This document shows, one piece after another, positions 17,184 to 48,640 of a stretch of 64,000 nt of DNA. The notes below the pieces were generated by a model. It was not told the origin of the DNA, did not search any database, and saw nothing but the letters and a program-made list of their open reading frames with translations. Within the stretch, counting starts at the first letter, position 1, and every line of letters begins with the position of its first letter. The stretch lies in the sequence record AP018399.1. One strand, given 5' to 3'. The position numbers were made by a program, and so were the translations under genes.

Positions 17184-17415
17184 GATTACTTCCCTCCGAT
17201 GAGGAACAGGGCCAGCGAACCGAGGAACCACAGCGCGGCGATGGTGGCGATGCTGTTGAACTTCGGACGGTACCAGTTGTTCTTGTAGGCTTCGACCAGC
17301 GTCAGGATGATGAGGACGATGCTGATGAGGTTCCAGAGAATCATGCGGGCCGTTCCGTAGTGGGTATGTGTGTAGAATATAGGGGTTAACTTCTCTTGTC
17401 AACCCCTATTTTCAA

Positions 17416-38075: not shown

Positions 38076-38729
38076 ATGACCAACATTCCGCTGTCTCAGG
38101 AACTTCTCGACTCGCAGACCGCATTGGATGCACTGCGGGCCGAGTACCGAATCATCCATGACAAGCTGATTCCGGCTGCTACGGCTCATCGGGAACTGTT
38201 TGCCAAGTTCGCTCTGGAAGCCTTCGAAGCTGCCGAGGACAAGCTGGCACACATCCTGTCGCCGCAGTTCTATGACGTGAGCGTGGACCATCTACGGGCT
38301 ACCGATGCGTTCCTGTGGGACCGCTACGGGGCACGTACCAGCGGTCACAACTCGCTGACCTATCAGCGTCTTCCGCAGTTGACGTTCTACAAGAACAGCG
38401 ACGGGGCACACAACGCGAAGATGGTGCGTCTGATTGAAGATGCACTGCCGCACATGCTGCCGTTCACTGCGGACATGAAGGACCACTACGGCCGGGAAAT
38501 CGACTCGCAGTTGCACGGCTTCTGCCTGTTCGGGACTCTGGAAAGTGGCCTGTCGGAACATGCCCGCATCAGTCTGTACGTTTCGCACGAGAAGAAGGTT
38601 CTGGTGTCGGCCACTCGCTATTCGCGTACTACGTACACGAAGGTGATGGAATTCGATGAAGGTATTGACTACTTCATTGAAAACCACTACTATGAGGACT
38701 TGTCGCAGCACGAACGCGACGATGACTAA
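38076..38729 (+). CDS. hypothetical protein
   Basis: 217-aa ORF. Confidence 0.75.
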   Translation: MTNIPLSQELLDSQTALDALRAEYRIIHDKLIPAATAHRELFAKFALEAFEAAEDKLAHILSPQFYDVSVDHLRATDAFLWDRYGARTSGHNSLTYQRLPQLTFYKNSDGAHNAKMVRLIEDALPHMLPFTADMKDHYGREIDSQLHGFCLFGTLESGLSEHARISLYVSHEKKVLVSATRYSRTTYTKVMEFDEGIDYFIENHYYEDLSQHERDDD

Positions 38730-39076: not shown

Positions 39077-39185
39077 GGGAATGTAGCTCAGAGGACAGAG
39101 CGCAGGGCGAGGAAGGGACTGGTTTTCCACCAGTAAACCCATCCAATCTCAGAAGTCAGTGGTTCGAATCCATTCATTCCCACCA
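39077..39185 (+). ncRNA. tRNA-like RNA with about 33-nt expansion of the anticodon arm
   Basis: GGGAATG/CATTCCC-A-CCA, normal D and T arms, 40-nt hairpin in place of the loop. Confidence 0.8.
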
Positions 39186-44841: not shown

Positions 44842-44917
44842 GGCCCGTTAGCTCAGCGGTCAGAGCAAGAGCCTCTAAAACTCCGGGTCGTGGGTTCGAA
44901 TCCCACACGGGCCACCA
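44842..44917 (+). tRNA. tRNA with CTA anticodon (amber suppressor), copy 1
   Basis: Loop CT-CTA-AA; acceptor GGCCCGT/ACGGGCC, A73. Confidence 0.85.
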
Positions 44918-44924
44918 ATCAAAT

Positions 44925-45000
44925 GCTTTCGTAGCTCAGCGGTCAGAGCAAGAGCCTCTAAAACTCCGGGTCGTGGGTTCGAATCCCACCGAAAGCGCCA
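44925..45000 (+). tRNA. tRNA with CTA anticodon (amber suppressor), copy 2
   Basis: Same body; acceptor GCTTTCG/CGAAAGC, G73. Confidence 0.85.
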
Positions 45001-45861: not shown

Positions 45862-46008
45862 ATTCTGATGGCGAAATAGGTAGACGCGGGGGTCTAGGCC
45901 AATATGGAGAAGGGAGCTAAACATTCCCTCTGCTGCTCATGGTCGGAAACTGCTGTGAAAGCGTTGCAGCAAAACGCTGACCGTGTGGGTTCGACTCCCA
46001 CTCAGAAA
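45862..46008 (+). ncRNA. Leu-type tRNA scaffold with large insertion
   Basis: D arm TGGCGAAATAGGTAGACGC, T arm GTGGG-TTCGACT-CCCAC, TTCTGA/TCAGAA. Confidence 0.6.
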
Positions 46009-46009
46009 T

Positions 46010-46430
46010 TACTATATAACAGTATGGTCGTAATCCCTTTAAAATGAAGGGCGTTCGGACGCGGGTTCGATTCCCGCCACGTCCACCACATGCATCTTAT
46101 AGCCAGAACTGAATCTGGTAAGAGGTAGTCAGCCACATTGAACCTTTCAGTAGAGCGCTGACCTAAGTCGCATGTAGTAACCCGCTTTAGGGTGCAAGTG
46201 ATGGGCGTGCCAAGGTTTCGACGGGCGAAGATAGTGGAGAAGGCGACTAGCCAGAGTAGGCTCTAAAACTAAAACCTAAAGTAACTGCCAACGCAAATAC
46301 TTTCGATTACGCACTAGCTGCCTAATCCCAAGCACATCCAGCACTTGGTCACCGAACGCTGGGCAATAGCAGTCCTTGGACTGTCTATTGTGAAACATCT
46401 TCTGGTTCAGCCAGCCTAGGCAAAAGACGC
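46010..46430 (+). ncRNA. ssrA: tmRNA, two-piece circularly permuted; tag (A)ANANTFDYALAA
   Basis: 3' acceptor piece ends CACGTCC-A-CCA at 46088; 5' piece GGGCGTG..TTTCGACGGG starts 46203; G3:U70; tag ORF 46287-46325; outer ends approximate. Confidence 0.9.
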
Positions 46431-46989
46431 ATGGCGGTATGGCACTCCGCATACAGAGGGTGTATTCACAATATGCAGTTCGTTATTGAGAGGAAATGTA
46501 GGTTCGATTCCTACGGTCGCCGCAGACCCCACTATGCTGGTCTGTGAAAAACAGTCGATATGGGTTAATATGGAAAACGCCTCTCATCTTTCAAATAGGA
46601 GTTGACAATGAGCATTGTTTTTGCTACTATGTCGGCTTCTGTAACAAGCTACGCCCTTGAGTAAGACAGTCAGGGAGTAAGCTCTTAATGTGAGCATGGT
46701 CGCCCCCACCTTTTGATAGGCTAGCCGGGGAGAGGTTCGAATCCTCTAAGCACCGTTAGGCTGAGACGAAAGGACTACGTTGCGAAGCATTGCACGCCAA
46801 TTCCGGAAACGGCTGGTAGTGTTAGCATCCGACTACAAGGGCACCAAATTAGGTGTTGACAAACGAAGAAAGTATGGTAATATGTACTTCTTCACCGGTA
46901 ACCACTGACGATTGGCCCACCGCAAAAGGGCCGAAACAGAGAGACACAAGCGAGTTTACCTCCTTCCTCGCCGTCTCCTGTCTGGTTTG

Positions 46990-47785
46990 ACAACTTGAGT
47001 GCGGAAACAATCTCAAGGTGGAATAGCGTACAGTGATGTGCGTAAAGTGTGGCCCGCTCAGGCTGCGCACCATGCAAATGGCTCCATCAAACAAGCACCG
47101 ACTCCGGGGCACGCCAAAAGTGTGTCACGGCCCTTGTGAAGAACCACGAGGGAACTTGGAAAAGGTGCCCGACAAGCTAGTCTTGGGACAACTGAGACAG
47201 TTTCCACCCGCAAAGTGGATTAGGGATGCAACACGGATACCAAGCACTAGTCAAGGTGTAGAACATAAGCATGAGGCTGCAACCAAGTGCGATGTTCAGT
47301 GAAGTGGGACTGTTTAACAGGCAGAACCGCATATACAATCCGAGTAGCCGCAAGCGAAAGGATACAGGGGCGTGTTGTATTTGGTACTTCAAAAGGGTAT
47401 CGAGCAACGGCAACACACGTCCTGAGCAACAAAACAACTTCATAGGTTAATGAAATTAATTAAACGCAAAGTTGTTGCCGGTGCATGATGAAAGTGACGT
47501 AATGCTTGACACGCAAGTGAATCAAGCCATTCCGAGGCTCGCAAGGCAGAGGGGTGTTGTGGGAAAGTCGCACGTTTGGGGTCGAACCCTTTACTGCTCG
47601 CAAGGCAGGCGGTAGACAGAACCATGAATAGTCATGCACGACAGTGGAAATGCCACCACTTTAATCTAGGCCGTCATGGTTGCTACTCACATGAGTGAGT
47701 GGATAACGGTAGAAACTTCGCTCGCAAGCGGAGTATAATGACCGGAAAGGTAACCAATCAATGCTGTAATCTCAGGCAGGCTTTT
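46990..47785 (+). ncRNA. about 800-nt giant structured ncRNA, GOLLD-like candidate
   Basis: No credible ORF; many GCAA/GAAA-capped hairpins; own promoter; embedded in the tRNA cluster. Confidence 0.55.
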
Positions 47786-47847: not shown

Positions 47848-47933
47848 GCGGGTGTGGCCGAGTGGTCGATGGCACTAGTCTTCCAAACTAGACTCAGAAA
47901 TGGGCGCGAGTTCGAATCTCGCCACCCGCTCCA
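47848..47933 (+). tRNA. tRNA-Gly(TCC) with long variable arm
   Basis: GCG/CGC-U73 acceptor; V-arm CTCA-GAAA-TGGG. Confidence 0.85.
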
Positions 47934-48058: not shown

Positions 48059-48137
48059 CGCGCGGTACAATCAATATCGGCAGATGGGCACCCTCATAAG
48101 GTGTCGGTTGGGAGTTCAAGTCTCCCCTGCGCTACCA
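48059..48137 (+). tRNA. tRNA-Met(CAT), initiator-like acceptor
   Basis: C1xU72 mismatch; anticodon stem GCACC/GGTGT. Confidence 0.75.
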
Positions 48138-48238: not shown

Positions 48239-48323
48239 GGGCGTGTGGCGGAATTGGCAGACGCACTAGATTTAGGTTCTAGCGCCGCAAGGCGTGTGGG
48301 TTCGACTCCCACCTAGCCCACCA
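48239..48323 (+). tRNA. tRNA-Leu(TAG)
   Basis: Class II cloverleaf; two acceptor mismatches. Confidence 0.9.
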
Positions 48324-48499: not shown

Positions 48500-48574
48500 G
48501 GAGCATTCGTCTATCGGTTAGGACGCTAGACTTTCACTCTGGAAAGAGGGGTTCGACTCCCCTATGCTCTACCA
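48500..48574 (+). tRNA. tRNA-Glu(TTC)
   Basis: Canonical cloverleaf. Confidence 0.95.
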
Positions 48575-48578
48575 ACAC

Positions 48579-48609
48579 AGAAGCCCGCCTAGTGCGGGCT
48601 TTTCTTTTT
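48579..48609 (+). terminator. intrinsic terminator
   Basis: AGAAGCCCGC-CTAGT-GCGGGCTTTTCTTTTT. Confidence 0.85.
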
Positions 48610-48640
48610 GCTATATAATAATTGGAACATAGGATTTCAA

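Follow-up and report, generated by a model that had tools for sequence, protein, structure and literature searches.

What occupies positions 46,990 to 47,785 of the stretch of DNA analysed here, about 800 nucleotides (nt) without a credible open reading frame (ORF) inside a cluster of transfer RNA (tRNA) genes? The stretch, hereafter the window, is 64,000 nt long and corresponds to positions 310001-374000 of record AP018399.1, the genome of Xanthomonas phage XacN1, with which it agrees at 100% in a BLAST against phage records. A preliminary description, made from the letters alone, had proposed "GOLLD or a new giant RNA". XacN1 is a jumbo myovirus of 384,670 bp with direct terminal repeats of 65,875 bp at 1-65,875 and 318,796-384,670 (PMC5852040). 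Of these, the right-hand one contains the locus, with an identical second copy near record position 38,572. The explanation that best fits the material as a whole, and a very probable one, is that this is the GOLLD RNA gene of the phage, placed in the tRNA island of its terminal repeat. Because the gene sits in the repeat, each genome carries two copies of it.

Identity of the RNA

The RNA at 46979-47778 is, to near certainty, a member of the GOLLD family. The whole window was scanned with the 4227 families of Rfam 15, and the GOLLD model (RF02032; gathering score 150 bits) matched 47365-47778 on the + strand over its full length (model positions 1-416 of 416) with 227.3 bits and an E-value of 4.1e-63. 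Standard pairs are formed at 92 of the 98 base-paired positions of the model. The same search found GOLLD, at 172-232 bits, in a set of relatives: the Stenotrophomonas phages CM1 and RAS14, the Xanthomonas phages BUDD and X1, the metagenome contigs L136 and L143, and the IMG/VR contig L006, which appears also as L148 and L181. In all of them the RNA lies in a tRNA island and is unannotated, and the XacN1 score is higher than most of theirs. At gathering score, the window held no match to ROOL, OLE, group II introns, RNase P or other large-RNA families; besides GOLLD it yielded 30 tRNA hits and a permuted transfer-messenger RNA (tmRNA), all on the same strand. A permissive Rfam scan of 46380-47420 added matches at chance level only. 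The Infernal search suggested in the preliminary description, with models of GOLLD, ROOL and other large RNAs, is thus positive for GOLLD and for none of the others.

The first half of the early proposal is borne out by this score. The second half, a new giant RNA, falls away, since the 3′ domain of the locus already stands in the GOLLD 3′-domain alignment of Kretsch et al. (Nature 2025; Supplementary File 3, PMC12286853), as AP018399.1:38572-38983 and 357367-357778, together with those of CM1, BUDD and X1. The XacN1 instance is therefore already catalogued, and it belongs to a known family. The 5′ boundary, the helices of the 5′ domain, a 5′ extension, the synteny and the promoter are what is added here. 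In the GenBank record, the interval from ORF088 to tRNA-Gly is empty of features; of noncoding RNAs, the XacN1 paper names tRNAs alone and no tmRNA (PMC5852040); and a search of full texts found no paper containing both "XacN1" and "GOLLD".

In the marine GOLLD env-38, whose structure was determined by cryogenic electron microscopy (cryo-EM), the part represented by the Rfam model is the "3′ region", residues 421-833; a 5′ domain of its own, less conserved, is made up of residues 1-420 (Kretsch et al. 2025, PMC12286853). Since RF02032 covers the 3′ domain only, the upstream half of the XacN1 RNA was tested separately. The core RNA that results is 800 nt long (46979-47778), with a clade extension of some 90 nt further 5′, and is divided as follows:

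46890-46978, + strand: clade-specific 5′ extension, with the motifs AACCACTGA (46900-46908) and CGAAAC (46932-46937)
46979-47346, + strand: GOLLD 5′ domain, 368 nt, closed by helix 46979-46989 × 47336-47346
47347-47364, + strand: interdomain junction, a hairpin GCCGCAAGC (47347-47355) followed by GAAAGGAUA
47365-47778, + strand: GOLLD 3′ domain, the universally conserved part and full RF02032 match

The size of about 800 nt given beforehand agrees with this core. The boundaries given, 46990-47785, agree with it at one end: the 3′ end is 7 nt from the end of the model at 47778, whereas the start falls 11 nt inside the closing helix, with transcription likely beginning some 100 nt further upstream (~46890).

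The noncoding character of the locus is upheld as well. The longest ORFs in any frame encode 87-89 amino acids, and the four longest reached no Pfam threshold and matched no PHROG family. The 5′ half folds at -162.8 kcal/mol, versus -144.0 ± 6.3 kcal/mol for shuffled sequences (z = -3.0; none of 100 shuffles as good). The locus had also been called rich in GCAA/GAAA-capped hairpins: six hairpins with GNRA caps are present against 2.0 ± 1.4 in shuffles, 17 of 1000 of which reach six, and the highest counts of the window are those of the GOLLD locus and its upstream flank. All of the motifs singled out in the preliminary description were found at about the positions given there:

47208: CCGCAAAG
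47347: GCCGCAAGC
47537 and 47596: GCTCGCAAGGC
47720: GCTCGCAAGC
47742: CCGGAAAGG
47750: GTAACCAATC
47763: GCTGTAATCTCAGGC

The 3′ domain

Covariation in the 3′ domain is extensive. An RNAalifold consensus of six lineages contains 99 pairs, 51 of them with compensatory changes, and recovers most of the Rfam helices independently. The domain is built of the following parts:

47365-47424, + strand: first hairpin, with a conserved CAAAA loop (47390-47394)
47409-47415 (bulge of the first hairpin) × 47473-47479, + strand: pseudoknot 1, enclosing an A-rich linker of 48 nt (47425-47472)
47481-47639, + strand: central multi-helix block, closed by 47481-47489 × 47631-47639
47504-47527 and 47528-47556: hairpins of the central block
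47578-47590 (UCGAA, loop 47582-47586) and 47594-47608 (CGCAA, loop 47599-47603): adjacent pentaloop hairpins
47640-47671, + strand: hairpin region, with hairpin 47652-47671
47656-47660 (loop CCACU) × 47643-47647 (linker AGUGG), + strand: pseudoknot 2
47672-47778, + strand: 3′ terminal block, with hairpins 47684-47701 and 47707-47744
47763-47777, + strand: terminal hairpin, with a conserved GUAAUCUCA loop (47766-47774)

Both pseudoknots are preserved through changes on their two sides. In pseudoknot 1, all 35 pairs counted over XacN1, L136, L143, CM1 and BUDD are standard, even though in BUDD both strands differ at six of the seven positions; this pseudoknot may be equated with a numbered helix of the published structures. 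Pseudoknot 2 recurs with compensatory variants, AGAGG/CCUCU in BUDD/X1, AUGAG/CUCAU in L006, GGUC/GACC in L009 and ACCGC/GCGGU in L099, which were read directly from the sequences, L006 being misaligned in the covariation alignment. The cryo-EM structure describes a pseudoknot of the same type (PMC12286853). The helix that closes the central block is likewise intact, with 54 of 54 standard pairs and up to four pair types per position.

The linker enclosed by pseudoknot 1 contains no embedded tRNA according to ARAGORN; in env-38 the corresponding segment is disordered and lies inside the cage (PMC12286853). A candidate linker hairpin, 47433-47440 × 47469-47476, was discarded because it overlaps the covarying strand of pseudoknot 1; a shorter 5-bp version (47436-47440 × 47469-47473) is compatible with the pseudoknot and barely varies.

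In the solved structures, the conserved A-run of the CAAAA loop links one chain to another through an A-minor contact (Kretsch et al. 2025, PMC12286853; 2026 review). The loop of hairpin 47578-47590 has a CG core in XacN1 alone and a UAGC-type GC core in all close relatives, both self-complementary, and the neighboring CGCAA pentaloop is invariant. From such a GC/CG switch, Kretsch et al. argued that a loop kisses the identical loop of a second chain (PMC12286853), and the UCGAA hairpin can tentatively be identified with their named self-kissing loop. By analogy with the published structures, the CAAAA, UCGAA, CGCAA and terminal loops would play the same contact roles in XacN1.

The 5′ domain belongs to the same RNA

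A model that stops short of the 5′ half invites the idea that GOLLD is confined to 47365-47778 and that this half, 46890-47346, is a separate RNA or encodes a small protein. The ORFs of 87-89 amino acids in this half fit that idea, as does the fact that sequence-only searches with it find close relatives alone: nhmmer against 123 IMG/VR GOLLD candidates recovered CM1/RAS14 only. The structure of the region points elsewhere. Within the closing helix, the following hairpins were delineated:

46994-47017: hairpin with GAAA loop
47026-47043: hairpin with AGUGAU loop
47047-47068: hairpin
47070-47081: hairpin with GCAA loop
47104-47130: hairpin with CAAAAG loop
47131-47152: hairpin
47204-47218: hairpin
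47261-47297: hairpin
47299-47336: hairpin

An RNAalifold consensus of XacN1, L136, L143 and CM1 contains 86 pairs, 39 of them compensatory, and compensatory changes support the 5′ half in five related phage or metagenome lineages. Pairing in the closing helix survives two-sided changes in BUDD/X1 and L006. The GAAA hairpin reads CUUGAG/CUCAAG in XacN1 versus CAUGUA/UACAUG in L136; hairpin 47047-47068 is changed in L136 on both sides at four positions; and hairpin 47131-47152 reads CCCUUGUG/CACGAGGG in XacN1 versus CUAUUACGG/CCGUGAUAG in L143. An alternative closure of the domain, 46977-46981 × 47364-47368, was rejected, being invariant and incompatible with the helix that opens the Rfam model.

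A small covariance model, R1, was built from the first 71 nt (46978-47048), which comprise the closing strand, the GAAA hairpin and the AGUGAU-loop hairpin, and was searched in 100 IMG/VR loci that carry the GOLLD 3′-end motif. Sixteen of its 20 best hits were in the right orientation and preceded the 3′ end by 776-1055 nt, a distance that is 800 nt in XacN1. The sequences matched are similar to how env-38 begins at its 5′ end, as in ...UAUGGUC...CGAAAG...AAAGUGGAAUAG. The family is too divergent for sequence-only searches, hence their failure where the covariance model worked. At the other end of the domain, the GGAUAC motif precedes the first 3′-domain hairpin in env-38 too.

Taken together, the closing helix, the covariation and the recurrence of R1 indicate that the XacN1 5′ half starts like other GOLLD 5′ domains, and it is a structured domain within the same RNA, as its covariation supports. 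Separate status for the 5′ half is accordingly very improbable: its ORFs match no family; relatives differ in it by paired substitutions and by insertions and deletions not divisible by three; its start is met again in other GOLLDs, equally far from their 3′ ends; and on the + strand nothing promoter- or terminator-like parts the two halves. A 5′ domain that is variable and about 400 nt long is, moreover, a known feature of GOLLD (Kretsch et al. 2025, PMC12286853; 2026 review).

Promoter, 5′ extension and transcription

The promoter TTGACA-N16-TAATAT that had been noticed at 46856-46883 is present and conserved in relatives. With its flank it can be described as follows:

46850-46883, + strand: sigma-70-type promoter, with an extended -35 TAGGTGTTGACAA (46850-46862), a 16-nt spacer and the -10 element TAATAT (46878-46883)

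A promoter scan counted 10 of 12 consensus matches and a TG extension. In alignment, the promoter is identical in L136, and CM1/RAS14 have all 12 consensus positions (TTGACA-N16-TATAAT). Transcription of GOLLD would start near 46890, and a discrete RNA is likely made from this promoter. Sites with the extended -35 motif, (T/A)AGGNGTTGACAA, number 24 in the window at no more than two mismatches, versus 4.5 expected, and none of 100 shuffles reaches 24; examples lie at 17396, 26717, 46596 and 46850. The motif probably marks the standard XacN1 promoter type read by host RNA polymerase.

Between promoter and core lies the 5′ extension, for which two hairpins are drawn:

46914-46932: first hairpin of the 5′ extension
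46937-46980: second hairpin of the 5′ extension, its last bases overlapping the 5′ domain

The z-score of its minimum free energy is -2.9. The invariant motifs AACCACUGA and CGAAAC are common to XacN1, L136, CM1/RAS14 and BUDD/X1, and L006 has two hairpins at the same position. XacN1 thus has about 90 conserved nt at its 5′ end that are extra relative to env-38, whose cryo-EM construct contains only 6 nt in their place. Because that construct nevertheless forms a cage, the extension is probably a peripheral clade feature, dispensable for assembly.

Downstream, the locus sits where the preliminary description had placed it, in a phage tRNA island; 28 tRNA genes and the tmRNA lie on its strand in the window, and tRNA-Gly follows GOLLD after 70 nt:

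47848-47933, + strand: tRNA-Gly(UCC)
48060-48132, + strand: tRNA-like Rfam match (31.3 bits) with a good T arm and acceptor stem, without an ARAGORN call
48239-48323, + strand: tRNA-Leu
48500-48574, + strand: tRNA-Glu
48579-48613, + strand: first terminator-like site after GOLLD, following tRNA-Glu

No terminator-like site was found on the + strand between 47778 and 48579. It is plausible that GOLLD is co-transcribed with tRNA-Gly, tRNA-Leu and tRNA-Glu and released by tRNA processing.

Such an arrangement raises the question whether the stretch is mainly the structured leader of a tRNA operon, acting in cis as a processing or folding platform with no free RNA particle. That nothing terminator-like parts GOLLD from the tRNAs before 48579 is what one would expect of a leader; GOLLD and ROOL adjoin tRNAs in many genomes, for which co-transcription has been proposed as the reason, and in BUDD, X1 and L006 the RNA directly follows a tRNA. 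The downstream neighbor is variable, though: protein genes follow in RAS14, and 500 nt separate GOLLD from the next tRNA in L136. The cages that form in vitro at nanomolar concentration and the conserved contacts between chains argue for a role as a free particle, and the leader explanation is improbable.

Relatives and solved structures

The relatives differ in how much of this organization they retain. Identity to XacN1 in the 5′ half falls from 84% in L136 to 43% in L006. The AGUGAU hairpin is common to all of the nearest relatives, and so is the 5′ extension, except in the truncated contig L143. CM1/RAS14 and L136 have an XacN1-type promoter, whereas in BUDD, X1 and L006 GOLLD directly follows a tRNA instead. 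L136 also matches the gene order of XacN1: permuted tmRNA, tRNA, an unclassified element (described below) and GOLLD. A pattern scan of metagenome and genome collections for the AGUGAU hairpin returned 102 matches, about 97 of them without GOLLD context; GOLLD was confirmed only in L136, L143, L148 and L181, with L177 and L194 unconfirmed, and an IMG/VR match in L007 was rejected as a chance match without GOLLD.

Among the solved RNAs, env-38 (marine metagenome; PDB 9MEE) is of the same Rfam family and shares the two-domain plan with an interdomain linker of tens of nt (48 nt in XacN1, about 70 nt in env-38). Both RNAs have the CAAAA loop, the terminal GUAWUCUCA loop, two adjacent pentaloop hairpins and a loop-linker pseudoknot after the central block; both adjoin tRNA genes, and their core lengths are 800 nt (XacN1) and 833 nt (env-38). 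In the 5′ domain, GUGGAAUAG and the GAAA hairpin at the start and GGAUAC at the end are common to the two; primary sequence outside the 3′ domain is otherwise not alignable, and the AGUGAU-loop hairpin of XacN1 was not found in env-38. This 5′-domain comparison rests on the short common motifs and the R1 hits; no close relatives of env-38 were among the loci fetched.

The Streptococcus agalactiae GOLLD (700 nt; PDB 9L0R) is of the same family and has the same 3′ domain core, but is missing a number of helices, one of the paired pentaloop hairpins among them, and its cage is smaller. XacN1 has both hairpins and is in that respect nearer to env-38. Mycobacterial GOLLDs, according to papers that cite Morgado et al. 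(2020), are of the same family and lie in tRNA arrays; some have a tRNA in the linker, unlike XacN1. ROOL resembles GOLLD in being a large phage or prophage RNA beside tRNA genes that forms an RNA-only cage, and is unrelated to it in sequence and fold.

Assembly and proposed function

In vitro, GOLLD RNA by itself assembles into defined cages at nanomolar concentration (PMC12286853). The env-38 RNA is a 14-mer of D7 symmetry, 380 Å across and stable to about 10 nM (Kretsch et al. 2025, PMC12286853); the S. agalactiae GOLLD is a 12-mer (PDB 9L0R), and its 3′ domain alone is mostly a 10-mer (9LMF). The number of chains varies among GOLLDs with the helices present and depends on the 5′ cap (2026 review). 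The preliminary description had called the function of GOLLD unknown, which needs an update as regards assembly: that the family forms homo-oligomeric nanocages is now known. By homology, the XacN1 RNA probably assembles into a cage as well.

A course of events can be proposed on this basis. Host RNA polymerase would start near 46890 and yield an RNA of ~890 nt; where the transcript continues into tRNA-Gly, tRNA-Leu and tRNA-Glu, as it may, tRNA processing would then free the GOLLD 3′ end. The folded RNA would comprise a 5′ "cap" and a 3′ "ring" domain, with the 48-nt, pseudoknot-held linker between them. As in the env-38 and S. agalactiae GOLLDs, 12-14 copies would then self-assemble, no protein being needed, and form a closed hollow shell that has the linkers in its interior. 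The CAAAA loop would contribute its A-minor contact, and the self-complementary UCGAA and CGCAA pentaloops would kiss and so join half-shells. During lytic growth, the cage might act on the translation kit of the phage by enclosing or scaffolding tRNAs or ribosome-associated factors. Another GOLLD has been reported to be a stable RNA and to increase in the course of phage lytic growth, and published ideas on the role of GOLLD include the encapsulation of tRNAs, ribosomes or other cargo and the storage of embedded tRNAs (PMC12286853; 2026 review). A translation-linked role for the XacN1 RNA is suggested by the constant placement of GOLLD among tRNA genes, and by the adjacent phage tmRNA in XacN1 and L136; it is offered as a low-confidence guess.

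Several points weigh against the account given in this and the preceding sections. The 5′ domain could not be aligned directly to that of env-38, and the R1 scores are weak (E 0.02-0.5), convincing only through the consistent position of the hits. The published L20-J13/15 kissing loop was not identified in XacN1. The start site, the 3′ end and the co-transcription with tRNAs are all predictions from sequence in XacN1; its cage is expected from homology, and the oligomer number varies among GOLLDs with the helix set; and the translation-linked role is conjectural. Finally, six model pairs of the 3′ domain are non-standard, three of them in hairpin 47652-47671, which keeps three of its six model pairs. 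The pairs missing there can be attributed to pseudoknot 2, which the hairpin loop forms instead.

The six non-standard pairs also bear on the idea that the locus is a decaying, non-functional GOLLD relic that the terminal repeat merely carries. In keeping with decay, the same island has at least one degenerate tRNA-like sequence, and the XacN1 transcript is itself a prediction. The relic reading is nonetheless highly unlikely: the model match is full-length and scores above most relatives, the promoter is conserved, and in both domains and the two pseudoknots the great majority of differences from L136, L143, CM1 and BUDD are compensatory.

The upstream element and other neighbors

The most novel lead near GOLLD is not the giant RNA itself but the segment directly upstream of its promoter:

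46652-46848: unclassified RNA-like element, ~200 nt, conserved in XacN1, L136 and CM1/RAS14
46602-46630: promoter-like site before this element, from the promoter scan

The element is closed by a 7-bp acceptor-like helix, GCCCUUG × CAAGGGC, followed by ACCA; in CM1, the helix is UCUGAGU × ACUCAGA, a compensatory replacement. Inside it, a T-arm-like hairpin (46726-46742) covaries, and GAAAGGACUACGUUGC..AGCAUU forms a strongly conserved block. Neither Rfam (E up to 10) nor ARAGORN, intron and tmRNA modes included, assigned the region 46640-46850, and no further copies turned up in a BLAST of phages or an IMG/VR pattern scan. It may be a stable tRNA-like phage RNA. One might go further and take permuted tmRNA, tRNA or tRNA-like sequence, the ~200-nt element, GOLLD with its extension, and the tRNAs as one conserved block of noncoding RNAs in which the element is a new RNA class working with GOLLD and the translation RNAs, a speculation that is rather unlikely to hold in full.

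The tmRNA of this neighborhood, at 45972-46416, is a permuted two-piece molecule with the tag ANANTFDYALAA, recognized by the tmRNA_permuted (123 bits) and beta_tmRNA (108 bits) models and by ARAGORN; it is unannotated in the GenBank record, and the word tmRNA is absent from the XacN1 paper (PMC5852040). At 46410-46523 follows a degenerate tRNA-like sequence with a T arm, GTAGGTTCGATTCCTAC, and an imperfect acceptor stem. ARAGORN reports it in intron mode only, as "tRNA-Asn(att)" with a 19-nt intron, and Rfam matches it as tRNA-Sec at 16.7 bits; it may be the tRNA pseudogene of the XacN1 paper (PMC5852040). L136 has a better tRNA at the syntenic place.

Other tRNA genes of the window and of related phages show peculiarities of their own. 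Two tandem tRNAs with anticodon CUA at 44842-45000 are amber suppressors, called tRNA-Pyl by ARAGORN and tRNA-Sup in the record; the XacN1 paper discusses the tRNA-Sup pair without finding target genes (PMC5852040). In CM1, ARAGORN finds a tRNA with anticodon UUA, an ochre-suppressor type (L002 2101-2175). A 106-nt Rfam tRNA match at 39077-39185 (45.6 bits) becomes tRNA-Trp(CCA) with a 33-nt insertion when ARAGORN allows introns; like the match at 48060-48132, it is missed by ARAGORN at its default settings. In RAS14, an HNH homing endonuclease gene annotated "Phage intron" lies between "tRNA-OTHER" and tRNA-Gly (L003 1378-2089), ~450 nt upstream of the GOLLD promoter. A skipping-rope RNA (RF02924, 58 bits) is found ~900 nt downstream of GOLLD in L148 (412-494) and L181 (5392-5474, minus strand), a further structured RNA that accompanies GOLLD in the tRNA island of an uncultured phage contig.

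Implications

GOLLD is among the largest and most elaborate noncoding RNAs of bacteria and phages, and its cage was solved in 2025. Being in a published alignment already, the XacN1 copy by itself adds little on the biological role. The XacN1 record is without GOLLD and tmRNA features, and the 5′ boundary, 5′-domain helices and promoter described here can be used to annotate XacN1, CM1, RAS14, BUDD and X1. The practical value of the locus lies in its setting: the jumbo phage is strictly lytic, in culture and sequenced, the promoter is clear, and several relatives have been sequenced, which makes deletion and pull-down experiments on a GOLLD RNA feasible.

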